DNA of 64,000 bases from Mizuhopecten yessoensis (taxonomy: Eukaryota), in NCBI RefSeq assembly GCF_002113885.1, contig NW_018408780.1, positions 245,543 through 309,542 of the forward strand, in the 5' to 3' direction. Position numbers and translations under genes: made by a program. This document shows positions 3,022 to 27,200 of the stretch, piece by piece. Position 1 is the stretch's first letter. Each line of letters begins with the position of its first letter. The notes beneath the pieces were generated by a model. The model was not told the DNA's origin. It searched no databases and was given only the letters and a program-made list of their open reading frames with translations.

Positions 3022-3268
3022 TCAGTTTGTGTCATCACTGCTTTCTGTGTCTGAATCCGAACTACTTTCATCTGAACTGTCTTTTCTCTTCTTTGTTTTC
3101 CTTGAATTGATATGAGAGTTCTTTCCCTTGACAGAATGGGATGAGAGGGAGCCACTGGGTGGCTGTGTGGTGTACACGTTCTGTGTACTGGAGACACGAT
3201 CTGTGCTAATCTTGCTGTTCCCCGTCGCTGATACTGGCCTTGTCTTGGTTTTCATTCGAATTGTTGGG
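3022..3268 (-). CDS. CSTPP1: CSTPP1 main terminal exon (PTIRMKTKTRPVSA...RKTKKRKDSSDESSSDSDTESSDDTN*)
   Basis: ttttttcag acceptor, phase 2; basic-then-acidic Ser-rich tail resembling the human C11orf49 C-terminus; lies within ORF 3022..3306. Confidence 0.85.
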
Positions 3269-6200
3269 CTGAAAAAATACAATTGAAAACTTTTTGTATC
3301 CTTCATATATAACTGTTTTACAACTGAACTGATAAAATGCTTAACTTTAAATAACTCCAGTTACAAAAACTTTCAGCACTCGAACAAAACAAACCCTGTC
3401 TACCATTTAAATGATATTCCCAAAGTCAAACCTTGTTCGTCCCAACACTGAAACACACATTCATTGAAGAATTTTGTAGGATCTGGTCAAAGATTCTACA
3501 AGTGAACAAATCATTCTTAGGAAATTAACAACACAAACAATTCAATTTAGTATTGCGCAGGAGCTGTATCTTTATGTGCAAGCCACTAGTCTTTTTTCAA
3601 CCTGGTTAATATCTCATGTATAAGCCTGCTTGTGCTGGAGATGTTATAATTGGGTTCCCCATGCTTCCAAAGGCAGTATTTTTTTTATAGAACCACCTCA
3701 TTCAAAGGTTACAACACAGGCACAGGACACCCACCCCTAGCTGTTTTGTATACTCGGGGTGGGGGTTGGGGTCTGTCTTCATTACATCGTGTTGATGATG
3801 TGTGGGAAAGAAGAAAAAACACTCTTTCTCTGAAAATTCCAGGCAACGATAAACCCCAACTGTCTTTGAAGTTTGTGAAAGGCTAGAGTATTAACTATGT
3901 GGTTATGCTGGTGGAAATTTGATCGACAGTTTTGCAGTATAGATATTTCTAGATGGACCATAGTTAATTTTGAGAAATGTGATCATCAGCTGCCAATACA
4001 TATAGTCTTCTGGAATGCAAATTTCCTTATTATTAACAAGTAAAAATAGTAGGTACAAAGGTATAAAGATTTTTCTCAAGATTAATGGAGCTCGGATTGA
4101 TGATGTTTGACTGTACACAATAAATCCAGAGAACTAAAATCGGTAACAAATCTCAAAATAAAAACATGCAGAGATGTAATTTCCATTATCATACAAATCT
4201 GAAACTTTTCATTTGTTAAACGGAAATTCTGCACAGTCTCTTTCACTTGTAAACATAGTTTCTGAAAGGAAATTGCGCACAAATTAATATAGAACAGTTA
4301 ATGTTAAAACATCTCACGGGTATCTGTGCTTATGACTATATAAAAGATAATTCAGTTCACAGGCTGATTATATTATATAGTGTGCAGCAGTGAGGCAGAT
4401 AGGTCGTGATAATATAACACAGTGAGGCAGATAGGTCGTGATAATTAACACAGGTAAGCACTTATCATCAAGGGTAAGGTATACACACACATGAAGACAG
4501 AAAGTACACAGGAGATTAGGAAATTAGAATATTGCAGCGATCATTTTATTATGTTGAGTGTAACCTGTGTAAACTCAATCCTGTATATATCATTTAACCT
4601 ATTCCTAAACATCTAAATGTAACTTCTCTACACCGAACCCTATATAATCTGGAACCTTGCATGAGCTTGATTTGTGTACTTGTGACCTGTTACACTGACC
4701 TTTGTCAGCAAAGTTGTGCTTTATACATTTCTATGTAGAACCTGAGTAAATCTAAAACATTTCTAATCTGACAGGAAGTTTTGTTCATTGTGTGTTTGAG
4801 GCAAGTTTAATGGTACAAATATGGAAAGAAAAAGTAATAATCTTAGAATCATTCAGTTACAAATCAAATGTATTTTCAGAAAATAAAGATTATACAGCAT
4901 TCAATGTTTTTGTGAACTTTGTAAAGTTATATGCAAAAAAAATATATATAAAATTATATAAAATTATTTTCTTTATAATAATCATGCAGAGTTTCAATGA
5001 ATTATTTTATTCCTTGATATTAAAATGAATTTCAAACAGAATATTTAAATACATGCATATTTGAATAATATTACAAATATAGTAAATTCATCAGTAGATA
5101 TATTGAGATGACTATGCTAAAATGTATACCATGCATCTGACTACATCTAGGATTACAAACCAAACTTTAGCAGCTTGAGATATGTACATACATATAAAAT
5201 TTGATATAAAATTTCAGAAGAATACTAAGTGCAGTACATGTTTTCAAAACATGAAAAGGCATCACAATGCTTTTTAAATCTTCACTATAATACTGTTTAA
5301 AATGTTTGCATACAGAAATAACTTGTGGGTGCAAACTTGATGCTTCATTCATATTACTTCTATATTAGTAATATTACTTTCAGAAGGCCTAGGGACAATT
5401 CCTTGTGCAAGAAAATACAAGAAGAAACTCAGCTCAAAAATATAGGTGCACAAATCCCATCTTTTTTGTTTGATAGTACAATTTTTGCACATCAGAAAAA
5501 TGAGGGTGTAGGAAATTAGAAAATACTAATATTAATAAAGCCACTTTGTCAATTTCTATATTTTTTTCTATCAAAATCAGTCAAATTGTCTAAATTTAAA
5601 TATCACTTACTGACAACATTTATTAGACTGGAATTATATGTGAGCCTGTTTAGATTATTTATGCTGTCGTTATAGATAAACATTCTTCCTTTATTTTTCA
5701 CGGACAGGAGAAAGTGCACTTGTAGGGATGAACATAAGTGTCACCAGTCAGAAACTTCACTAAGAAATAAAAACATTTGTTCAGAGAAATGTTATATAGA
5801 CAGTCAATCAGAATCAGAATGTATTGATATAGAAGTACTGTATTTGTCCAGCAATAAGCCCATGCCTGATAATAAGCCCATCCAATACTATCAAATGATA
5901 TATTCCGTCTTTTCGTATTGCAGAGTTATCTGCTCTTGTGAGCAGGTATTGATTGTTACGTTATTTGTTTGTGAGAGTAACGTCATCAATTTTTGAGAAA
6001 ACAACGTAATTTTCTCACACAAACCAATGACGCAACAATCAATACCTGCTCACAAGAGAAGATAACTCTGCTATACGCAAAGACGGAATAGCATGACAAT
6101 CAACCAGCATCACTATGTATTAATATAGATGTACTGTATTTGTCCAGCAATATGCCCATGCCTTGTAATAAGCCCATCCATATCAAATACAGTCCAGTAA

Positions 6201-9200: not shown

Positions 9201-12200
9201 AGACCATTATATAAGGACTACAGTGGTATAAAAACCTGGTGACAAGTTTGGTCGAGGGGGTACAGTGTTGAACACTCAGGTGCTCCAGGCATGTTCTTAC
9301 TGATAAAATATAGGGTGAGGGTTGACTCTCACGGCAAATACGGTACCACTCTATTGTTTGTGCAAATGACTGGGTAAACTGCTTAAATTAATTGTGTGTC
9401 ATGTAAGCAATTTTACCGATTTAATGTCATTTATAAGGAATACATATTAAATTTGATTTCATTACATTTTCATGTTAAAAAGATAAGTAGCAATGATCAA
9501 ACGCAAGGCAGTGTAATTGCCAAATTTCAAGACAATAAAATTTGCAAAGCAATGTTGAGTGACAAATTAGGTTTTCACATCAGCAGCTGATAGATACCTG
9601 GCATGAGCTTGGGGATTTGGCACTGTCAGTTGAGGATTAATAGCCACAGTTTGACCGCTAGGATTTCTGTAAAATGGTCAACATGGTCACACAACACACT
9701 TTATACAGAAAAGAATTATTAATACATATACAAAAGAAAATAATTCAAAATAGTAAATAAATATATCGACAATATCAAACAACATCAAGTAGCTATATAG
9801 TATATACTTTATATCAATATTATATTAGTCAAGGCCATTATGGCTTTACAGTATCTAGGTCAAGCATGATTAAAAACAGTAACATGCAAAACAAAGTATG
9901 TCTATATTCCTTGTATATAAACAAGGTTAAGCGTCACTTAAAAATTGTAATAGTCAAGGTCAAGCTTCAGTTTACATTATATTAGTCAAGGTCAAGCATC
10001 ATCATAGATTAATTGTAATATTCAGGGTCAAGCTTCAGGATACATTATAACAGCCAAGGTCATGCATCAGTGTGTATTATATATAATCAAGGTCAAACAT
10101 CAGCATGTTTACATTATAATAATAGTCAAGGTCAAACATCAGCATGTTTACATTATAATAGTCAAGGTCAAACATCAGCACATATACATTATAATAGTCA
10201 AGGTCAAACATCAGCACATGTACATTATAATAATCAAGGTCAAAGTCAAGGTCAAACATCAGCAGGTTTACATTATAATAGTCAAGGTCAAACATCAGCA
10301 TGTATACATTATAATATTCAAGGTCAAACATCAGCACGTATACATTATAATAGTCAAGGTCAAACATCAACACTTATACATTATAATAGTCAAGGTCAAA
10401 CATCAGCCCTTACACATTATAACAGTCAAGGTCAAACATCAGCATGTATACATTATAACAGTCAAGGTCAAACATCAGCATGTATACATTATAATAGTCG
10501 AGGTCAAACATCAGCGTGTATACATTATAATAGTCGAGGTCAAACATCAGCACGTATACATTATAATAGTCGAGGTCAAACATCAGCGTGTATACAATTA
10601 TAAAAGTCAAGTTCAAAGCAACACAAAACTGACATATAATATAGATCTCTTCATAAAACCATTTCTTCTAACAGAAATTATATAAGATTATGTGTTGCCT
10701 TCCAGGACTCTATAAATACAGCATCAATCGCTACTACATATTATAGGCATTCCTGTCTTATAATGTATGTTATCCTGTAAGTGAACTTCTCTGATAAAAC
10801 GGGCTGCAGAGAACATGATCATCAATTGTTTTCACTTTTTCTGTAAAAAAGATCATTTTCAGGTTCCATACCATCTATGTACATGTATCAAATCAGATTG
10901 GAAAAAATTACCCTATCAACAAAGTCTAAAGATGATCTGTTAAACAGGTAAACAAAATATATCTGAAAGGTCAATTATGATGCATGTACCATAATATTAA
11001 AATACATGGAAACATGAAGGAGGTAAAATGGTGTATATGTATATCAAAACTACATAACTCACATTTCATTTCAACAAAACTGGTATATTTTATTTCAAAC
11101 AAATTATACAAGCTCTATATATTATAAAATCCACTGTATATATGAAAACATAATCTGTTGTACATACATTCTTGGTTAGGTATAAAATGTAATAACTAAG
11201 TACCAATATGTACAGTTATAAACGTGTTTATAAAGAACCCAACAGTGGACAGATGACCATGCATTTGATGATGTCCAAGGAACGATACCTAGTGGACAGC
11301 TGACCGTACGTGCATTTGATGATGTCCAAGGGACGATGCCTTAAAATCACATGTGTTCATTATAAACATATTTTACAAATGTACATGGAACTAATTACTA
11401 ATATATATGTATAAACTTGATTTCTTTGGCAAAATCATACATTCAAATCCCTACATCAGTAACCACATAAGTAAACACATATCACTGACCTGTCCACCAA
11501 TGTAGAAAATTAATTTGTCATCTCTCTGAAAGTCTAGGTGCTTTAGATTTCATGGAGGACTTTTCAACCAAAATAATTATGACAGAAAAATAGCCTGTAG
11601 GCAATGTTAACAACATTGGTGAGAATTGTTTCTCTTTGAACACCAGGCAAAGTAGGTGGAGATTATTCAATATGTTTATACAGAGAAACCTCTATATAAC
11701 GTCCCTCACTTTGTTTTCCAACCCACTTTATTGCCAAACTTTACACATACTTCAAAGTTCCCTTTTCCCTATGAATATTTCTTTTTATTCCTCCCTTAAA
11801 AACATTACCAAAACCCTTTATAATTGCAAACTCCTTTGTAATCCAAAACTTTTTTATAATCCCAGACTCGGTTGTGACACCTAAGTCTATGAAATGCTTA
11901 ATTAAAATAATACAAACGGGGGCAGTATACACGATAATACAAACGGGGGCAGTATACACGATAATACAAACGGGGGCAGTATACACGAAGGGTTTACCCC
12001 ATTCTCACCTGTATAACACACAAACTGGTAACTAACCAAACATAATTCAGGGTTTACTTTCAGACAGGTGACAAAAAAATATATATACAAACTTCGATCC
12101 ACACAACATTCTGAACACAATTTTTTTACATTGTTGAACACATATATTACATAAAGACGATCATTGAAAAAATTGGCTTAAAAATATTACTCCAGACTCA

Positions 12201-15200
12201 AAAGGTGACTGTCCTTTAAAGTTAAAACAATGATTGTTCAAGCTGAAATATGACTATCACCTGGATAAATATAATTCGTTATTGTAGTAAATGCCACTTA
12301 TCTCACTAAATATGATAAAATACTATTAATATATAAACTTATATATATGATTACTGGCAATTAAAGCAAAATGTATGGCAAATAAATGATAAATACTGTC
12401 ATTTAATAAAAAAATTATACCCGAATAAATTATTGGTTTGTAGCACTGCGTTATAACCTGTAAATAACATAAGCTTTTAAGAATGTCAGAAAATGGACAG
12501 CAACTTTGGAGTGAACTTTCAGTGTTCTCAGGAAGGGTTTCCATCCGTTTTAGTTTGTAAATGGTCAGAAGATCATTGCACAATTACCGAGTCAAGTTTC
12601 TTTGATGTATAATGGCTAATTATACAGATATCTTATGAGTTTGATTGGCAACAGTGACCAAAGAAAGTAACTCGCGGGAAAGACATTGAAAATACTAAAA
12701 CAAAGTATTGGTAGATATTTTCACTGGGATAATGTTACTTTTTTGACCAGCAAGAGTCCCACTTCACTGAGTGGTAAGCTCTTTCCCGAGGCCAAGGACT
12801 ACAGTCTGCCTTCAAGGGATACTAGTGCGTTATATGTAATACATTGACTATATTTCGTGAGTGTCCATTCTGCAACATTATTTTTTATTAAGCCCAACAT
12901 TTAGACTAACGCTTGTGTCGACCTTACGACCACCACTAGAAATATAGATCCCGTGGAGGGGGGGTTACAAACTTACAAGAATCTGTAACCAACATCTGTA
13001 TCAACCAAGATACTGATATCACTGCAAATGGTAGTAAAAGTTTGCATCTTGTGGCTTGGAATGTTGTTTTTTAAGACATTTTAAACATAGATAGAATGTG
13101 TGTATATACCTGCTAGAGACAATACTTTCAAAAATGACATATTTTGAGTTGTTCTTTCAGATAAAATCATTAGTTCTTAGATTACAGGAACAGTTTAGCA
13201 ATAATTCACTGGTTGAAAATACGTCACCCACCTAAGGGAGAGAAGGCAAGCATGACTACAAAGGTATAATAACAACAAAAACATATACCGGTAGACTTAA
13301 ACATTTTTTATGCAAATAATTATGATTAAGTGTTAGATGGCCCCCTGTGATAAATTTATATACAGTTATAGACTGGGCAGGAGGCAAATAGTTTTTTTTA
13401 TTACCCTTGAAGGCAAACTATTTTATGAGGCCAAAGGCATGCAAGAACTTCATAAAGTAGTGTAGACTGTATTTTGTGTGACTATTCTACTTGTAAACAA
13501 CTAACCTCCATACTTACTTAGCAAGCTGTACGGGTGGCCTGAGAAAGAATCACAGAGCATCTGGATATACTGAAATACTTGTAAGCCTAGCATGACCAGA
13601 TGCATTGTGGGGATGAATTTGTATCTCCGATTAAATTCTTTCAATTCAAAATCATATTCCTCTAAATAACACAAAGACAAAAAGAAAAATTTATAACTTT
13701 ATCTGCATGTCCAAATAATTATTCAAATTCTTTTACAGAAAATCTTTTGAACAAAAATTTTCAAATTTTAATTATATTCAATACTTTGTTAATATTTTTT
13801 TTTAAATCACAAAATGTTAATCTGAACATTTTTTTATGAAATTAAAACCATTTTTAGTTAAAACGCTCAGTCTTAATTATAAAGATTATGTTATGGAAGA
13901 AATTGCTTTGACCATATTTATGTGAATTGGCTATAGGTCTTGTCTTTGGGAAGATATTGAGTCTACGAAGGAAAGCATGCAAACACACAGTTATACGTAC
14001 ATTACTGCAAAGAAATGTACACGACTGAAGTACAGAATAGATAGTTACTGGCACTGATCTACCTAAACATCACCGACAGAAGTTCTTCTGCAACTAATGG
14101 TGGATTATCTAATGTTCATTTAACACAAGTTTGTTAAAAACTGTATAAAATACTATTTTAAAATTAACTTATTAGAGTTGGATAAACATAATAACCATTT
14201 TTGTTGGAAATACTATACAAGATTCCTATTTTTGATGAGGTTCCCATTTACCATGAATCATTACACCACAATGGAGGAGGGCTGGCCAATGACAAGTGTG
14301 TGTGTGTGTTGGTGTGTATGTGTTTGTGTGTGGGGAGGGGAGGGGCCCCTGTATGGCTTGTTTGGAGTTATTATATGTGTTCTGCATGAAAAATTCAGTT
14401 AAAAAAACAAAACTTATATTGAGAAAATTTTTAAACTGAATTTCTACAATCAGACTGGGGGGAAAAGTCCACATATAATTGGTAAGGAGCTGAACATCGG
14501 CATAATTTATAGAAGGAGCGAGTGCTTGTCTGCTACTAAAAGTTTGGTTTGCCCATTGATACAAATATATTCATTTTTGATAAAAAAAAAAAACTTATTT
14601 AATAATCATTACCATTAATTGTTTTGCAATTAGCAAACATACATAGATATACAGCTAAACCTGCCTTATCCAACCCCTGAGTATTCTGTCAACTGTCAAA
14701 TCTGACATACAGCTGCAATTCATTTCTTATGAAAGCTAATTAATAATGCAGGTTTAATTAATCTTTCACTTCCTTGTCGGATCCAAGAGGGTCTAAGATT
14801 TGACAGGTTTTTCTGAAATAATCCAAGCAATTGAAAATAAGCAGTGAGCTTCTATGACTTTCTCTCCTAACATTGGTAAAATAAAGAATTATTTTTTGAC
14901 TAGGCAACTATAAATTAATTCTTTGCTCATTGGAATTTCTAAAACTTAACTAATTCAGGTGTTCCTCATCATTCCATTTATAATTATTTGGCTGTGATGG
15001 AAGGGGAAACACTGCCCCTCTTTGCCTTATTTCAAAGAATAAAAAACAAATATTTAATTTATTTGGATTACCTCCCTTTGTGCTGCATATATATAAAAGG
15101 TAAACTTTGCTCCTTTTTTAATTTATTTCAAGGTTTCATCAGAATCTGAAAATATTCGTTAGGGTATTGAATGGAAACCATCAATCAATTAAAGTGATGT

Positions 15201-18200
15201 ATGGTTTATAATTTTACATATTTTTGCCCAATTTCAAACTCAGTCTGAGCCTGCGAACAGATTTGACGGGCAGAACACGAGAAACAGGCATGTGAACAGA
15301 TTTGACGGGCAGATCTCGAGAAACAGGCATTCTCCATACCCTAATCGGACACAATTTTGACAGATATGTTATACAATTTATTACCTAAATCTGGTTGATT
15401 TTTCTTGTTCAGCGAGTCATTTTTTATTAGTATTTTTATTAAGATAACTGGATAGCTGTTTATTTCATCACAACCTAAGAAACATAAAAACAAGGAATTG
15501 AAATTTCAGTGTCCATGTACTTTTTTAGGCAAAACAAAAACTCTGTTTAAATAAGGTAAAATGTATACATTTTTGCAATATATTATTTTCTTTCATAACT
15601 GAAATTCAAGAAGTTTTGGTCCACAAAAACTGTGGCTAACAAGGGAACTATATGTAAGGATAAAACTAAAGCAGGAAGGATTGGACTAGAGGTTACATAT
15701 ATTGATGTGTGTATATAGACATATCAGCTTCAGATTCACTGATAACTTACTTTGTTGGCTTTTTACTGTAAACATAGTAATGGTAATGTCATTAGTCTGT
15801 CATCTGTAGAAAATTAACATAAATATTATGTAACTAAAAATGTCCATCTCCTTGTTAAAAAATAATGTCCGTCCCCAAATCCACCTCCTTGTTAGAAAAT
15901 AATGTCCATCCCCAAGTCCACCTCCTTGTTAAAAAATAACATCCATCCCCAAGTCCACCTCCTTGTTAGAAAATAATACCCATCCCCAAGTCTTCATCCT
16001 TGTTAGAAAATAATACCCATCCCAAAGTTCATCTCCTTGTTAAAAATTAACATCCAACGCGAAGTTCACCTCCTTGTTAAAAAATAACAACCATCCCCAA
16101 ATTAACCTGCTTGTTAAGAAATAACATCCATCCCCAAGTTCACCGCCTTGTTAAAAAAAAACATCCATCCCCAAGTTCACTGCCTTGTTAAAAAAATAAC
16201 ATCCATCCCCACGTTCATCCCCTTGTTAAAAAATAACATCCATCCCCAAGTTCACCGCCTTGTTAAAAAATAACATCCATCCCCAAGTTCACCTCCTTGT
16301 TAAAAAATAATATCCATCCCGAAGTTCACCTCCTTGTTAAAAATTAACATCCATCCCCACGTTTATCCCCTTGTTAAAAAATAACATCCATCTCCAAGTT
16401 CACCGCCTTGTTAAAAAATAACATCCATCCCCAAGTTCACTGCCTTGTTAAAAAAATAACATCCATCTCCAAGTTCACTGCCTTGTTAAAAAATAACATC
16501 CATCCCCAAGTTCACTGCCTTGTTAAAAAAATAACATCCATCCCCAAGTTCACTGCCTTGTTAAAAAATAACATCCATCCCCAAGTTCACTGCCTTGTTA
16601 AAAAAATAACATCCATCCCCAAGTTCACCGCCTTTTTAAAAAATAACATCCATCCCCAAGTTCACTGCCTTGTTAAAAAATAACATCCATCCCCAAGTTC
16701 ACTGCCTTGTTAAAAAAATAACATCCATCTCCAAGTTCACTGCCTTGTTAAAAAATAACATCCATCCCCAAGTTCACTGCCTTGTTAAAAAAATAACATC
16801 CATCCCCAAGTTCACTGCCTTGTTAAAAAATAACATCCATCCCCAAGTTCACTGCCTTGTTAAAAAAATAACATCCATCCCCAAGTTCACCGCCTTGTTA
16901 AAAAATAACATCCATCCCCAAGTTCACTGCCTTGTTAAAAAAATAACATCCATCCCCACGTTCATCCCCTTGTTAAAAAATAACATCCATCTCCAAGTTC
17001 ACCGCCTTGTTAAAAAATAACATCCATCCCCAATTTCACTGCCTTGTTAAAAAAATAACATCCATCCCCACGTTCATCCCCTTGTTAAAAAATAACATCC
17101 ATCCCCAAGTTCACCGCCTTGTTAAAAAAATAACATCCATCCCCACGTTCATCCCCTTGTTAAAAAATAACATCCATCCCCAAGTTCACTGCCTTGTTAA
17201 AACGTTTTATTTGCACGCCTTTAAAAATGTTATTCAGAAAGAGGACAAAACAAGATCAATAACTATTTTGAAAAACATACGCTTAGGGTGATTCTAGTAA
17301 ATGCATCCTGTCTACTTTGTGCTGGATAAACACATGGTGGGTATAGATTTTCAACAATCAAAAACACTGCATGGGCCTTTTGGAGAGCAAAACTTTTGAT
17401 TGGAAGAGATTTTGTTTTTCCCTGCTGGAATTTTTTTGTGGGGGATGTGATCAATCAAATGTGAGAGTCGTCTACAAACAAGACATTTGGAATTGTCATC
17501 AAGGACACAAATGGTAAATCTTGGTTCTATATATTCTTAGTCTTTGGAATGTACACTGTAATATGGTAATTAGTCTACTTTCACAATCGCATATTATAAT
17601 TAGAGTTACTTCCCCTGAAATTTACAAGAACAAGGCTCAGCCACAAATCAGTTATCTGTACCTTCCTTTAGGCATCTAGCAATAGTTGGAATATGGAATA
17701 TATATAAAGCATACTGACTGGAGGGTTTAGCTCATTCACCCCTGAAGACACATTTTAACTCTTCCAAATCAAAGGTTGGAATAGTTCATTTTGAAATTTC
17801 AGGGGTGAATGAGTTAAGTGAACAACTGTATATCAACAACATATAACACACGGTTTGTTATCACACCACACAGCACTCCAACCCGCTACCACTAGTAAAG
17901 CACCAGAAGCAACAGAACAATGCCAGTATAAAACTGTACCAATACTTGACAGAGAAAATCCAATTATGAAATAATAGATTTCATTAAAAATCCATTTGAA
18001 TGAAAGCAATACAGTATTGTACCAAAAACTATCAAATGATATAGACTTCTTGAATTTTTGGAAGATAATAATCAAATAATCTAGCAACGCTGCTTACAAA
18101 ATTTCTCAAAAAAGTAGCAATTAAACAAATTAAAGTTGTGTACAAATATTTTACAAGCCAAATAATTATGTTTTCCGCATTAAAAAATCTTCTTCATGAA

Positions 18201-21200
18201 ATATTACTTTAAAAAACAAAAATTGAAACTGTACAAAAAATGTTTTGTGGCAAAAAATAATCATATTAATTGACAATAAAGTTTGTAGAGTTTGTTTTTG
18301 AGATGAGACAGAGAAATCAGCTCCACTTCCCCGAGTGCTACCGCTAGCCCCATTGTATCAGGAGCATTAAGATATACTCCCATTGACTAGACAACTTTTC
18401 AACTCATGGATCCTTGGAAATCTGAGAAAAAGAGAAACGTGACTGTATTACCGATATGTATATACTGGAGAACTGTTTTCTTCATATTTACCATAGATTT
18501 CATAGATTTAAAGCATTGGAGATCTACATTTGCCACTTTAAACCCTCAGTCAGATAAAAATATCGTAATGTTTTTACCAACAACAAGAAAGAAGAGGTCT
18601 AAAGGGTTTTGAATCGCTCACCTATGATTTTGTTAATGTATGATTTATAAATACCAATGAAAGCTATCTTGGATTTCAAATATGTACAAAAAGTAAATAG
18701 CACTACTTTTTTACCAATCTACATGATGAAACTGCTAGATTGAGTGGAAAAAAAGACCCAACCCATCAGGGGTCATGATCATGGATGTGAACTTTGAACT
18801 TTGATTGGACTCAAAAAAGAAAAAAAAAAAGAAAAAAAACATTCATTTGGAGTCATACATATGAGGACCTTTCCTTAAACGATATGTCAAAAAACTTTTA
18901 TTATCACAATGACTAGTTTGAATAAGATTTGAAAAAGAAATTGAAAGACATATTGAAATGTACTATGGCATAATGCATTTAGTTCATTTAATTGGACTAA
19001 GTGATATATAAAAATGGTAAAATGAAAAATAAATATAACAAAATAACTGTTTGGATCAGAAAATGTAATTTGCTATTTCAGAACCTGACTCATAACATGG
19101 AACTCACATAAACCCTGACACTACTTATAAGTCATAATCAGTCATTACTTGATTGGTAAATAATGATAACATTGTAACAAACGTTGTTGATTGTCTTGGC
19201 ACTTCCCATCACTACTGAAACGAGTAAAATAGTCAGTAGAAGTGACATCCGCTCCCCACAGAAGCTCCTGGGTTGTGGGTGTAAGCATAATAATTATGCT
19301 GGAAAATGAACATTTGTTCAGATTCCATACCATAATATGCCACCTTGTCACCTCAAAATTAACAGCGATATTCCTCTTCCAACATTTGGTTTAGATCGGA
19401 TGTATTGTTCAAGTGATATCAACCAGAAAGCATCATTTTCACAAAATTTCAATTAATTTATAGTTAGTATGACCTTGACCTTTGACCTAGTATTTCCAAA
19501 ATGGATTGAAAAGTACACCAGCCTTATGCTATGATAGATATAACTCTACAATCTCCATATTTCAGTAATTTTGATGCTATATGTGATTTGCCTGAAGTAA
19601 ATTTAAGTGAGCAATATTATGTCCAACATACTGACACATAATCTAGGTCACATGTAACTGTTTTCTCTGTAGTTTAAAAATTACTATTATTTTATCATCG
19701 ACAATCTGTTAGACACTTGTGTGTTTTTTTCAACATTTAATGGTTCATAAGTTTTCATAAAAGATTCCATTTTGTAAACAACTGTAATTCTGAACAGCAA
19801 TTATAGACTGATCACATTCAACAAATCACAGGAGCTGTAACATTATCTACTGAACATTCAACCAATCACAACCAATCACAGGAGCTGTAACATTATCGAC
19901 TGTACATTCAACCAATCACAGGAACTGTAACATTATCGACTGTACATTCAACCAATCACAGGAACTGTAACATTATCGTCTGTACATTCAACCAATCACA
20001 GGAGCTGTAACATTATTGACTGTAGTATTATAAGCCACACAAGCATCTTGTGTACCATGTATTGTTCTAGGCTCGGTTATAACCGGAACAAGGACGTAAA
20101 GCCCCACCAATCAATCAATCAATCATGTGTACCATGTATCTATATCATAGACATACAGTGTAGAGTCTGAACTGTGCCCTGTACAAATACTGTGGTTACT
20201 GGTAACTGAGAACTGTGGTTAACTGTTATGCCTTTACTCAGCTTAACCTTCATCAAATCTTAGCATAGCAAAATGTAAAGAAAGGAGGTTTTGTTTCTCC
20301 TTCCAAATGGTTTTCAACATTAATTAACTATCAACTTTTGCTTAAGAGCAATAATATGGACCTGGCTAATTAAATGATGAAAAAGTTACACAGTAATACA
20401 TGCATACATGCTGACCTCAGTTATCTAAGGGAGCTTAACTAACATAAACTACATGTAAAATGTGTCATATGGTACACCAATATATCCTTCAAACTAAGAT
20501 CAAACTGTCACAAAATCACATGCATAATTGCTAAATATCGTCCTGCATATTTAGCCAGGTCTTAGGTATAAAGTATTTTAAAACATAAATTAATATAAAG
20601 TGATCATGATCTTATTAACTTATTATAACATCAAATATATATCAGTGTTCCCTCAGAATTTTGCATTTTGGGGTATATTTGATACATTGATCTTCAAGAT
20701 TCTGTACCCCCTAGGTATGTATAAGGCAATTCTTGAAAACTGAGGGTACAGCCAACTGTTTTGGCGGTGAAAAACCCCTCATTTAGGGTTTCTAGGAACA
20801 CTGATAGATACATACATGTATATAGTAATTACATCTGAAATGTGAAATTAACACTGGCCAAATATGGACTTTACCATTAAAGTTTGAACACATGATTGGT
20901 GAAAGTTTCACAATACACAATTGTCCTCAGGAATCCTGGAGGAGGAGTAAAGTTGAGTACATGTGTTGAGGTTTTGTGAAGGAGGAGTGAAGTTAAGTAC
21001 ATGGGTTGAGGTTTTGTGAAGGGGGAGTGAAGTTAAGTACATGGGTTGAGGTTTTGTGAAGGAGGAGTGAAGTTAAGTACATGGGTTGAGGTTTTGTGAA
21101 GGAGGAGTGAATTAAGATCACACATGAGTCTACCCTTTATCACAGATGCTAAGCCTGTGTTTGGTATTACGCTACACCCACTTCCACTTTGTTGAACAGA

Positions 21201-24200
21201 AATTTTACCATAATTCACCAGCAATAAACACCCCTTGTTAAACCCATTCACCACTGTAGACCATAATAGACTCATCCAGATGAGTGTATGGTAGAGTCTA
21301 CTCAAGTTACCTAGGGATGAAAGGGTTAAAAGAAAATTTTACCTTAATTCTAGTATCCAGAATAAAGATTTTTTCTGGATTAATGACACTGATTTTGTAA
21401 TTGAAAATCAGTCCTCACCCTCCCTTCCACTTCTACTTCTTTACCCCAGTAAAACACACCATTTGTATAGAGAACCATTGGGACACCAGGTGTATATATA
21501 TGGGAGAGAAAGGGATAGCTTACGATGTTAATTCGGAGTCAGCTCCTTCTAATAGTTCAGCCTTCGGAGGGAGTCTCCCTGAAAACAGTGTAAAACGTTC
21601 AAGCTACAATAAGTGCAATGCAGAATTTTAAAGTCACAAGACAGAAAAGACAGTTAAGCGATTGTGAATGACAAAAAAACATTAAGAAAAATGAACCTTA
21701 TATGCATGTTATGAATTTTATTGGAAAAGTTTATTTTTAGTATGTTCTGGTTTCACGTCATGCCTATACTTTCAAATTTTTACAGAACTACCAGGTATCT
21801 GAATATCGATTTAAGGGATGATTCTTACTGTTGTAATATGTTAATAAATATTGTTCTGAATACTGAAATTTGTATGTTTATTGGTAATAACAATACTATA
21901 AGTGATATATGATTTAAACAATATGTTTGGTTGATATTCTTTGTGGGACTCAAGTAGGTCACAATACCATCTGTTTGATGTTTTGATGTACAAGTATTTC
22001 ATCTTTATAAAATGTTTCAGGAATAGAATGGGATACTTAGAAAACAAGACAACACTCGTTCATAGAAAAAAAAGTTAGATACAATGTATCGGTATATTAT
22101 TCAATGTTGAGGAAATAGTTTCTGGAAAAAAAGTATTGGGAGAAAAGTGCAACACCATATAAACACAACTGGTTTTCTATTCATATTCACTCTCTAAACT
22201 CTAAACAAACAAAATAACTGGGATTTTTATTGGAAAAAATCAAAACAAATCAGAAGAAAAGTTTTAAGTGCAATTGTGCCAAATAATTGTGGTATCACTG
22301 TACTGAAGTCAAAAAAGGCGTGCTGAAACGATCTGGTAATAAAGACATAATAAGCACACCAGCTCTCCTTACAAGGCTATTTCCGACTCTGGTCCCTCCA
22401 AAAGTTCCGACTTTTGGGGCATCCATCCTGTAAACAGATCACCATACTACTGTACTACTGTACACACTACTGTCAAATAACTGTACACATTACTGTACAT
22501 ATAACTGTACACACTACTGCACATATCACTGTACATATTACTGTACTACTGTACATATAACTGTACACACTACTGTACATATTACTGTACTACTGTACAT
22601 ATAACTGGACACACTACTGTACATATTACTGTACTACTGTACACACTACTGTACATATTACTGTACAAATTACTGTACTACTGTACATATAACTGTACAC
22701 ACTACTGTACATATTACTGTACTCCTGTACATATAACTGTACATATTACTGTACAAATTACTGTACTACTGCACATATAACTGTACACACTACTGTACAT
22801 ATTACTGTACTACTGTACATATATGTATGCGAGATGTTATCTCTCTATTGTAGAGTTTCCGGATCCACTGTATGTCTACATGTTTTAGATTATGTGTGTT
22901 ATCATTCTTGTGTCCTTAAGTATCCAAATAGAAAAAATGACCATATGGTGAAGTAAAAATGTATTCTTTGCTTGTCGTTCTGTATCCATATTTTCTTTTT
23001 ATTGAATAGGTGCTTCATTACAATTATTTGGTTATAATGACAGCCAACTATGTAAACTGAATTAAATTTGCCAAGATTCCCTATTTGATGATGTCTGGTC
23101 ATCTCCTCTTTTGAATTTTTTGGCTAGACCATCCTCGATATCCAGGGGTTACGCTTACTTTCGCTCTCTACACCCCTGGAATATGTCATGGCAACATTGA
23201 AGGCACGAAGATAGCTGTTTGATTGGTCTCAGGTATAAAAAACTGACCAATCGCTAGGCTGATACCTGTCCTTTGAAGATTTCAAAGGAGAGACGCCCGA
23301 CTTCAAAGCCTGTCAATTTTTACCGTTACGTTACATGAACGCGAGATTCTTTTGATGTACATCAAAGGATCGGAATTAGTCTTGAACAAGGTGGCGCACA
23401 TCTATTTTGCCATGACATATTCCAGGGGTGTAGAGAGCAAACGTAAACGTAACCCCTGGATATCGAGGATGTGGCTAGACTAGTGAACTCCATTTAAGAA
23501 TCCCTTAACTGGAGTAAGCAGAATTTCGCTGAACATTCACTAGCAGATGTTGGATCTAATTTTCCTTTGTATCCATAATTATTTTTCATTTCAAGTGATT
23601 ATGACTAGTAAATCTATACAATTTAACTGATTATAGGATGGTGCCACAATAATCTTAACTACTGCCTTACGAGGTCAAGGCCAATTTTTCCTGAAAGTGC
23701 TATACAAATAGTCTACATAATATAATATGACTATCTAAGTTGTCTAAATAGTTGATTTTAAAATAGGTAGAGACGACAAAAAATTATATCTATCATATTG
23801 TTGATACTGAAAAATGCTTTAATTTCGCAGGATTAACTTATCAGACTGGTTACTGTCAAATTCACCCTATAATGCTATTAACAGTCAAGCCTTTTTTTTT
23901 CAAAGTGGAATTTTTCATTGTATATTGTTCACAGATCTATATATTTATATACCAGATATGTTAATTTTAACATGTACAATATACTGTCAAATGTATAATA
24001 TGCAAAAGGTTGAATAAAAACATGTTAATTTGAAAACAGTCAAGGCTTACTTATACTGTATCACAATGGTAATTAATGTGTAATGAAGGGTAAATATTTT
24101 GAATATATTTTCAGGCCATAAGTTTTAAGCAGATTTGACCTCTGTGATATAAAAGCACTATACATCATCCTTTCCTACAAGCTTTATATATATAATCATC

Positions 24201-27200
24201 TACATATATTGTACTATATATGTGACTACTTGAACCATCATATACTGGATCAGGTGCCAAAGAAAACCTACCTATGTGGTCGTTGATAGATTCACTCTTA
24301 GCAAGGGCCATTAGGAACCCGTAGAAGGACACCCTCGGAACATTAAACAGAATCTCCTTCAGATAGTTTCCTGGTGGTGTGCTGATGATAAATGAGATAT
24401 TCTGTTACAAGTTAGGTTATTTGTAGTGTAAACAACAAACATATATTAAAACTTCATCTTGATTGTATATCGTAAATCTTGAGAGTATTTATGGTGCCTT
24501 TTAACTTGGATACCCTCAGTACCTGTAGATTCCAAAGTTTTTCCAAGGTCCCATTAACATAACCAGGTTGGAATACATAGCCTAGAAAATTTTGAAAATA
24601 AAATCATCAAATTCTTCTGTATCTACATCCAAACTAAAATTACAAAATTTTGATTTTCACATGATGTTACATTAACAAACAAATTTAAAAGCACATTGTT
24701 TACTTTTGCCTTCTATAAATTCCTACGTTTGCTTCAAAAATACGAAAATTCTTCACTCTTCTGTTGTCATTGTGTAGTATACTGAAAAAAGAGCTGTGTT
24801 GCTCCGTTTCCCATTTTTTGTTCATTGTACTCCGTTTGTTGTTGTCTAGTAAACTAAACAAGGTTTAGAGTACTTCTTTCTTCATTTCCTAGTGTGCTTG
24901 ACAAGATTTCCGGTATTGCTTTCTCTGTTGTCTAGTGCTCTTGATAAGATTGTGAGTATACTCCCTTTTCAATGTTATTGGGTACTCCCTTCTCTGTTCT
25001 CTAGTATACTGCGATTTTTAAGTATTCCCTTTCCCGTTGCCCATCATAATTCAAGGACCATAATTTGGGCACTCTATTCCATGTCTTGTTTTCTAGACAA
25101 ATTATTTTATTAATCCATAAAAATAACAATACATTTACCTGATGGTCCAGTACATGTAATTAATCTAATTAAAATTCCGTCAAATATTAAGAATTTTGCA
25201 TAGAAGTGGTCCATACAGAAAATACTTACCTGAAGGTGGATCGATCACACAGAGGGTATACAGCCCTGAAATACTGCATGGCGTCAACGCCATCAGAAGG
25301 ATGGTGGCTATTCTGGTGGACCTTTGTGTCTTCTGTCCCTGATGGTACCACCACTGGGTCCCGAGGACTACGCTGGGTCTGCATCAGTGACAGGTAAATC
25401 TCATGGCACTTTTCCATAAACTCTAAAACATTGAAATAGTGTTCTTTTNTAATTATTTTTTCATTTTTTACAAGACAAGACAAAACATATATGACATTGT
25501 TCCTCAGTACATGATTGTTCATACAATTTAAACAAAGATCATCATCATCATCATCAGACATCATCATCATCATCATCATGTAAGATATTATTATTAACAC
25601 ATAAGCAGATATTAAGCAAAAAATTGCCCATGTCATGTACATACATAAAGACATACACCGAGACGCTGATGCAAAAACAATATATATAAACCTATGACAT
25701 CAAACACACAAGAGAAAAAACAAATAAACTGAAACAGAAAAAAAACCCCACAAAACATTACAGGGGATGGGGAGCACTCCTTGGTCATTATATTTTAACT
25801 TAAGCCTGGCGAATTAAAATGTATGAATATTTGATGATTATTATTACAATGAGGAGACGATAAAGTACAATAGATGTATATATGTATAGAACAAATATGT
25901 CATATATATATATATATAGTCATATTATAATTGCATCCAGTTATCTATTTGATGATTAAACTCATCCTTATTTATTAATTTATTCTGTTAGTAAAATCAT
26001 GATAAATGAATTGTATAATACTAAATTATGATGATCTTTTATTGAAAAACTGGTAACAAAAACTTGTAAAATCCTTTATTTTCAGTTTCAGATATTACAA
26101 CGATGTGCTGTTTTTAAATAACAAGAACTTTATTGACAACATCCATCATATACTGTGTGCCCTCCAGAACATGGTTTCAAAAACACTACTAGGATGCTTT
26201 TGACTTTTTAACTGTGATTGTGAACTTTCCCTTTTTTGATAGCAACACCTCTGTTTCCCTTACATACAGTGTCATCATGTCGCAGTTGAATAGCAACACC
26301 TCCGGTTCCCTTACATACAGTGTTGACATGATTCATGTCACAGTTGAATGGCTATTTAAATGTTTGCTCAGAAAATCATTATTTCTGATGGTTGACAGAC
26401 AAACTTACAACACAGAGCATCGAGATATGCTATTTTCTTGTGTGATTTATGAAGGTCAAAATATTTTATTATGCTCTTTTAATTTTTTGCTTTGTTGTTC
26501 CATTGTCACTAACTCAGTTCTTGCTAAGAAGATGTCACACCACTTGGATTTGACTTTAACTAACATGGCAGGCTTTAACAATGAAGCAAAAAATGCCTAC
26601 ACTTTCGTTTACATAAACAAAAAATCATGTGTATCATTATCTACCTTCATAATAAAACTGTACTTGGAAAGCATAGATGAAGTCAGCGAAGGATATTAGG
26701 CAGTCCAAGGCATCATCCAGCAGTATTATTCTGAAATCAGTAATATTACAATCAGTTTTGAATTACTAATCAGACCTGTCCATGTATATCAGTTGTTATA
26801 AGAAAGATTTATTTAAGATTCTTTCAAATTAACAATAACAAAAACAAAGGTGCTACGGATACTGGATAAGAGAACAGAACATCGAAGGTCCTTTATCAGT
26901 TATCACAAGGAAATATATCTTTTATAATAAGAAATATAATTTTCACCAAAGATTTTATTTTGCCTCTAAAATTTATTTCTTTACAGATCACAAGTCATTA
27001 TTTCTTTACAGATCACAAGTCATTATTTCTTTACAGATCACAAGTCATTATTTCTTTATAGATCACAAGTCATTATTTCTTGCTCACCTTGCAGTCTTCT
27101 GTACAGGTTCAAATGGAAAGTCTGGACACAACAGTGACAACAAAGAGTGATACTCCTGGATACTCAGTAGATCTACAACACAACAACAAGTACATCTACT

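Follow-up and report, generated by a model that had tools for sequence, protein, structure and literature searches.

Tandem exon duplication and probable mutually exclusive splicing in the CSTPP1 homologue of scallops

Introduction

Among described cases of mutually exclusive splicing, the closest to the one reported here are the C. elegans exon pairs whose length is not a multiple of three (non-3n) and which depend on nonsense-mediated mRNA decay (NMD) (Kuroyanagi et al. 2014, PMC4165533). In these pairs, adjacent homologous exons of equal non-3n length are separated by a long intron, and double inclusion or double skipping shifts the reading frame to a premature stop. Fidelity depends on NMD in 14 of 19 non-3n mutually exclusive clusters of C. 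elegans (PMC4165533), and exons 4a and 4b of F30F8.9 (83 nt each, 683-nt intron, NMD-dependent; Table 1 of PMC4165533) illustrate the dimensions involved. Here, we describe a pair of 55-nt exons, 8a and 8b, in the CSTPP1 homologue on the minus strand of a 64,000-nt stretch of the scallop Mizuhopecten yessoensis genome (“the window”; all coordinates are window positions). The scallop pair shares the arrangement, the long intron and the frame consequences of the C. elegans pairs, but it belongs to a bivalve CSTPP1, the part played by NMD is presumptive, and the duplication was found in one bivalve family of those sampled. We consider it very likely that 8a and 8b are a mutually exclusive pair, produced by tandem duplication of an exon on the branch that led to Pectinidae.

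ATE1 exons 7a/7b (PMC7797038), Dscam and 14-3-3 zeta likewise combine tandem exon duplication with the use of one exon per transcript, but unlike those systems the scallop pair had no detectable conserved docking/selector complementarity. Alpha-tropomyosin exons 2/3 and C. elegans pairs with introns of <40 nt (PMC4165533) also provide two alternatives that are never joined in the product; those pairs are sterically exclusive, whereas in scallops steric exclusion is ruled out by the intron between the exons, which measures 794 nt in the window (as stated in a first-pass annotation of this DNA, which had judged the spacer too long for that mechanism) and 760 to 2608 nt in other pectinids. The same exon pair, with 8a replacing 8b, is present in RefSeq models of CSTPP1 from other species (Pecten and Argopecten), while all five M. 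yessoensis isoforms lack 8a. What we describe is an ordinary type of alternative splicing, already modelled in two sister scallop species, and not a new splicing mechanism. The TTLL1 tubulin polyglutamylase complex of human cells includes CSTPP1 as a peripheral subunit, which forms a peripheral module with LRRC49/CSTPP2 and stabilizes TPGS1 (PMC13376646). Judged by titles and opening lines of abstracts, 15 of the 19 CSTPP1 papers found gave no account of scallop or mollusc splicing or of the exon pair.

Sequence, homology and reading frame of exons 8a and 8b

The features that define the pair and its surroundings are as follows (basis of each assignment in parentheses):

24272..24381, minus strand: exon 7, constitutive, 110 nt, encoding …LKEILFNVPRVSFYGFLMALAKSESINDHI plus G (RefSeq mapping, RNA junction)
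22428..22457, minus strand: 3' splice-site region of 8a, with the sequence CATGG(T)GATCTGTTTNCAG conserved among four pectinids (alignment)
22373..22427, minus strand: exon 8a, 55 nt, encoding (G)WMPQKSELLEGPESEIA; diverged copy, minor form in the reads examined (sequence, isoforms, comparison, read depth)
22352..22372, minus strand: conserved intronic element just past the 8a donor, GTAAGGAGAGCTGGTGTGCT; candidate splicing enhancer (alignment)
21579..22372, minus strand: 8a-8b intron, 794 nt (sequence)
21524..21578, minus strand: exon 8b, 55 nt, encoding (G)RLPPKAELLEGADSELT; ancestral-like copy, major form (sequence, RNA junction, isoforms, comparison)
21473..21499, minus strand: conserved element downstream of the 8b donor, ATATACAC-N-TGGTGTC, ∼25 to 50 nt after the donor (alignment)

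Exon 7 ends in phase 1 (...ATA G/gtaggt, the slash marking the exon border). Both members of the pair begin in phase 1 and leave two bases (8a, ...tttacag/GATGG...GCCTT/gtaagg; 8b, ...ttttcag/GGAGA...ACATC/gtaagc), and together with the G of exon 7 they encode GWMPQKSELLEGPESEIA (8a) and GRLPPKAELLEGADSELT (8b). Direct reading thus reproduced the lengths, phases and peptides of the first-pass annotation. The two exons are identical at 34 of 55 nucleotides (ungapped) and 10 of 18 amino acids, with different codons at 6 of the 10 identical residues. When the window was searched on both strands for AG-55 nt-GT segments open in phase, 134 were found; the comparison of 8a with 8b scored 47 (BLOSUM62) against 4 for the runner-up, so the resemblance is not due to chance. 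A third copy proposed at ∼19299-19150 (LTPTTQELLWGADVTST, score 27) was rejected: it lacks AG/GT borders, has no counterpart in the other pectinids and scores no higher than the noise of the scan.

Either exon alone reads through in frame into all three downstream exons tested. The residue that follows depends on the exon used (L or F for 8a, S for 8b) because the remaining TT or TC joins the first base of the next exon. Frame tests also bore out two earlier predictions about the aberrant products. Splicing 8a to 8b gives TTG GAG ACT CCC TCC GAA GGC TGA, with the stop eight codons into 8b and at the same position in all four pectinids, and skipping both exons shifts the frame, with stops within 5 to 14 codons in two of the three downstream exons (the third, a 22-nt cassette, is too short to hold one).

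Isoform models and RNA reads

The use of one exon per transcript, as originally proposed, is supported by isoform models: each of 29 pectinid RefSeq isoforms (17 from Pecten maximus, 5 from M. yessoensis, 5 from Argopecten and 2 from a fourth pectinid) contains exactly one of the pair, with none containing both and none lacking both. In P. maximus isoforms X6, X8 and X15 (XP_033751475.1, XP_033751477.1 and XP_033751484.1), the place of 8b is taken by GWMPQKSELLEGPESEIA, identical to 8a of the window, and Argopecten XP_069132660.1 has the 8a-type peptide GWLPQKSELLDGPESEIA, which differs from 8a of the window at 2 of 18 residues; the remaining isoforms have the 8b peptide. Exon 8a is followed in Pecten X6 and X8 by the orthologue of the cassette exon at 9600..9666, whereas in Pecten X15 and Argopecten it is spliced straight to the last coding exon, giving …EIA-F-PTIRMK.

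Four raw M. yessoensis RNA runs from three studies were examined, with depth calculated in 200-nt bins. The junction of exon 7 to 8b (24271->21577) was spanned by 14, 10, 1 and 2 reads in the four runs. Mean depth in the bin containing 8a (22300-22499) was 1.16 in run X20 and 0.28 in run X21 (∼232 and ∼56 read-bases, respectively), and the adjacent bins were empty, which fits ∼4 reads and ∼1 read over a 55-nt exon, unlike an unspliced 150-nt read. Per-base depth of exon 7, 8b and 8a was ∼24, ∼21 and ∼4 in X20 and ∼11.5, ∼11 and ∼1 in X21, such that 8a and 8b together approximate exon 7 in both runs. These values fit replacement of 8b by 8a in roughly a tenth of transcripts (∼10 to 15%), and exon 8a seems to have been missed in the annotation of M. 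yessoensis.

Two further observations were made on the same reads. Weak depth at 19100-19499 and 19900-20300 coincides with no exon in the mapped isoforms, falls within or close to tandem repeats, and was discarded as a sign of additional exons. At exon 7 positions 24303, 24315 and 24364, all X20 and X21 reads differ from the assembly (A>G, G>A and T>C), probably through allelic or strain differences.

Age of the duplication and selection on its copies

The window was compared with the corresponding loci of Pecten maximus, Argopecten, a fourth pectinid (GCA_031769215.1), Pinctada, two Mytilus assemblies and Tegillarca; the Pecten and Argopecten loci were located through the longest isoforms. 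Both exons were found in all four pectinid genomes, each 55 nt long with intact AG/GT borders and an open frame, whereas in Pinctada, both Mytilus assemblies and Tegillarca there is only one exon, of the 8b type, to which both 8a and 8b align. Because the pair is in four pectinids and a single exon in four outgroup loci, the duplication postdates the split of the pectinid lineage from the other sampled pteriomorphs and predates the divergence of the sampled scallops. Relative to the outgroup consensus (RLP[TS]KSELLEGADSELT), 8b differs at two positions and 8a at seven, indicating asymmetric divergence of the copies. Within a genome, the nonsynonymous divergence (dN) between 8a and 8b is 0.26 and the synonymous divergence (dS) is saturated, in agreement with the great age that the first-pass annotation had ascribed to the duplication.

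Identity among the four genomes (aligned parts) is 84 to 96% for 8a, 89 to 98% for 8b, 82 to 88% for constitutive exon 7 and 41 to 62% for introns. Of the 10 sites that vary in 8a, nine fall at third codon positions (P ∼ 4 × 10−4), its interspecies dN is 0 to 0.05 against a dS of 0.2 to 1.1, and dN/dS is ∼0 to 0.08 for both exons. This substitution pattern indicates that both copies are kept by purifying selection, the constraint that had been suspected from the window alone, and the third-position bias together with high identity argues that 8a is not a decaying pseudo-exon.

Splicing signals and neighboring repeats

All four splice sites are ordinary U2-type (GTAAG…CAG) and no ATATCC or GTATCC donors were found among them, which rules out incompatibility between U2 and U12 spliceosomes as the basis of exclusion. 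The pyrimidine tract of 8a is weaker than that of 8b (11 of 22 versus 15 of 22 pyrimidines). Identity of the 8a-8b intron is 59 to 62% (three species), compared with 45 to 48% for neighboring introns. The elements downstream of the two donors have a TGGTGT core in common, located within 45 nt of the donor in each case; the introns flanking the two copies, earlier described as unrelated, are therefore not wholly so.

Several repeats lie in the same introns. A minisatellite at 22443-22823, made up of 12- and 44-nt units and rich in ACTGTACA, ends ∼15 nt upstream of the 8a acceptor; its transcribed strand has many TACAG motifs that resemble decoy acceptors, it is not found at the aligned place in the other three pectinids, and it might influence the use of 8a in M. 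yessoensis. In intron 7, an element resembling a miniature inverted-repeat transposable element (MITE) at 23130-23471 has 71-nt terminal inverted repeats (93% complementary) that are 200 nt apart. RNA depth over this MITE-like element reaches 240 to 350, with reads mostly 90 to 95% alike and many rearranged joints, and the element therefore belongs to a family of abundant, transcribed repeats. Another repeat with very high representation lies just downstream of 8b at 21100-21499 (RNA depth of 270 to 400, many variant letters), beside a 40-nt tandem repeat array at 20897-21136.

How one exon per transcript might be secured

If 8a and 8b are indeed a mutually exclusive pair, each mRNA would receive one of them and with it an 18-residue segment. 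Exon 8b, having kept the ancestral sequence, would be the default, and 8a would have diverged early, changing at 7 of 17 positions shortly after it was duplicated, and then been frozen by purifying selection, to serve as a minor and probably regulated alternative that may be aided by the adjacent conserved intronic elements. Exclusivity would be secured by the reading frame: because 55 is not a multiple of 3, double inclusion would lead to the TGA and double skipping to a frame shift, and the aberrant products would be truncated, cleared by NMD, or both. The list of enforcers named in the first-pass annotation (regulation, RNA pairing or NMD) can be narrowed: frame incompatibility was demonstrated, and the search for docking/selector pairing that it recommended gave no conserved complementarity.

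Several observations weigh against this proposal. The M. yessoensis RefSeq isoforms X1 to X5 all contain 8b and none contains 8a, and the 8a isoforms of Pecten and Argopecten are computational RefSeq models. A search centered on the 8a segment of one such isoform (P0171) found 8a in no other cluster representative and in no protein derived from a Logan transcript. Use of 8a in M. yessoensis is seen as read depth alone, in two runs of one study; no 8a junction (7->8a or 8a->9) was among the joints listed, a list dominated by joints inside two transposon-like repeats. It is also worth noting that when 8b is joined to the last exon, the TGA of the double-inclusion product falls ∼33 nt before the last junction, where classical NMD dependent on the exon junction complex might not act.

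The absence of 8a from X1 to X5 and of its junctions from the joints listed would also be expected were 8a an unused pseudo-exon, a decaying relic of the duplication. We regard this as extremely improbable, since the AG/GT borders, length and open frame of 8a are intact in four genomes, the exon is 84 to 96% identical while introns are 41 to 62% identical, its substitutions follow a codon-like pattern, it is in transcript models of two species, and exon-sized depth is limited to its bin; the scenario that the first-pass annotation had offered as its own refutation, an 8a unexpressed and decaying in relatives, is contradicted on each of these counts. Alternatively, 8a could be a poison cassette exon that is included together with 8b, the resulting TGA lowering CSTPP1 output through unproductive splicing and NMD. 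The conservation of the double-inclusion stop in four of four pectinids, the status of 8a as the minor form, and reads that do not separate 7-8a-8b from 7-8a-9 would all suit such a role. However, 8a, read in the frame set by exon 7, shows constraint on its protein sequence (third-position bias as above, dN/dS ≤0.08) and has kept the family motif G..P.K.ELL.G in common with 8b, RefSeq models of two species splice it to downstream exons without 8b, and the summed depth of 8a and 8b approximates that of exon 7 in X20 and X21, which together make a poison exon very unlikely.

A further alternative accepts that one exon is chosen per transcript but assigns the choice to competing RNA structures of the docking/selector kind (in the style of Dscam exon 6, 14-3-3 zeta and ATE1), with frame and NMD as a backstop only. 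Tandem exon duplication can create competing structures of this kind (PMC6071210), both exons are followed by short conserved intronic elements with the TGGTGT core, and a 15-nt inverted repeat pairs 22347-22361 with 24375-24389. Against this, an ungapped search without G-U pairs found no complementary 8-, 9- or 10-mer in at least three of the four species across intron 7, the intron between 8a and 8b, and the initial 3 kb of the downstream intron (the remaining 3 to 5 kb of which were outside its scope). The inverted repeat was rejected as a selector/docking pair: its exon 7 arm differs in the other species without compensation. We therefore think it unlikely that RNA structures make the choice, and favor a mutually exclusive pair whose fidelity would be secured by the reading frame.

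The encoded segment and its significance

Among 34 aligned homologues, which range from molluscs to vertebrates, G252 and P255 never vary and L254 and K257 are almost invariant. As modeled by AlphaFold, the M. yessoensis isoform with 8b has a predicted local distance difference test (pLDDT) score of ∼83 for residues 251 to 260 and is disordered from residue ∼268. From alignment and pLDDT together, exon 8 is predicted to lie at the edge of the fold, as the final ordered piece of CSTPP1_N, which bears the G-x-(L/M)-P-x-K motif common to the family, followed by the beginning of the disordered tail. Exon 8a retains G, P, K and ELL.G but has W in place of R, M in place of L and GPE in place of GAD, and the two segments may differ in function. 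A more doubtful extension is that the 8a/8b switch gives pectinids a route of their own to two versions of the polyglutamylase complex. If so, the form with 8a (W-M-P-Q-K, and G-P-E instead of G-A-D) might bind partners or be targeted to satellites differently in certain ciliated or neural tissues, and its use might be controlled by the conserved intronic elements beside 8a.

The pair provides a clean, datable case of exon duplication followed by asymmetric divergence, in which one copy stays ancestral and the other is frozen across the scallop family. The change affects a motif whose conservation extends from molluscs to vertebrates, within a regulator of tubulin polyglutamylation that is still little understood. 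It also offers a natural pair of variants with which to probe the role of the CSTPP1 G-x-L-P-x-K segment, and in practical terms it flags an exon apparently missing from the M. yessoensis annotation.

Host gene and other features of the locus

The host gene is, by similarity, a homologue of CSTPP1/C11orf49. A search of a representative library with a stretch of exon 3 gave 115 relatives, including full-length CSTPP1 proteins from molluscs to vertebrates, and a word search from one relative (P0006) retrieved named CSTPP1/C11orf49 homologues from a wide set of molluscs, with precomputed matches to PF27900 (CSTPP1_N). A Pfam scan of single-exon translations gave no family match, either because the exons are too short or because PF27900 is missing from the Pfam copy used, and a word search with a stretch of exon 7 returned only three genomic fragments, which read through into introns, and no spliced isoforms. 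M. yessoensis RefSeq isoforms X1, X3 and X5 align exon by exon to the window at 100% with zero mismatches, and the genome has a single CSTPP1 locus. The remaining parts of the gene model, all from RefSeq isoform mapping, are as follows:

Between 29764 and 24272, minus strand: exons 1 to 7
13517..13538, minus strand: first cassette exon downstream of the pair (…PPVQLAK), included in M. yessoensis isoform X1; possible acceptor for 8a or 8b
9600..9666, minus strand: downstream cassette exon (NPSGQTVAINPQ…AHA)
3025..3268, minus strand: last coding exon (PTIRMKTKTRPV…SSDDTN)

The last coding exon (3025-3270, minus strand) is used in two frames. In the main isoforms it encodes PTIRMKTKTRPV…SSDDTN, while Pecten isoforms with an alternative exon RKKKKSHL… (window ∼7975-7883) finish in …EPNDSNENQDEASISDGEQQT, the other frame of the last exon (3259-3212); in the window, the shifted frame reads PNNSNENQDKASISDGEQQD and then a stop. 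Pairs of isoforms from M. yessoensis and Pecten (P0185 versus P0189) differ by two residues, …AHA-RP-SPTIRMK versus …AHA-SPTIRMK, as expected from a 6-nt micro-exon. An open segment of 15 nt at 15750-15764 on the minus strand, AAAAAGCCAACAAAG, has borders cag-t and gtaag and encodes KKPTK; all five M. yessoensis RefSeq isoforms lack it, but it matches a small cassette of Pecten and Argopecten isoforms, and is possibly an unannotated micro-exon.

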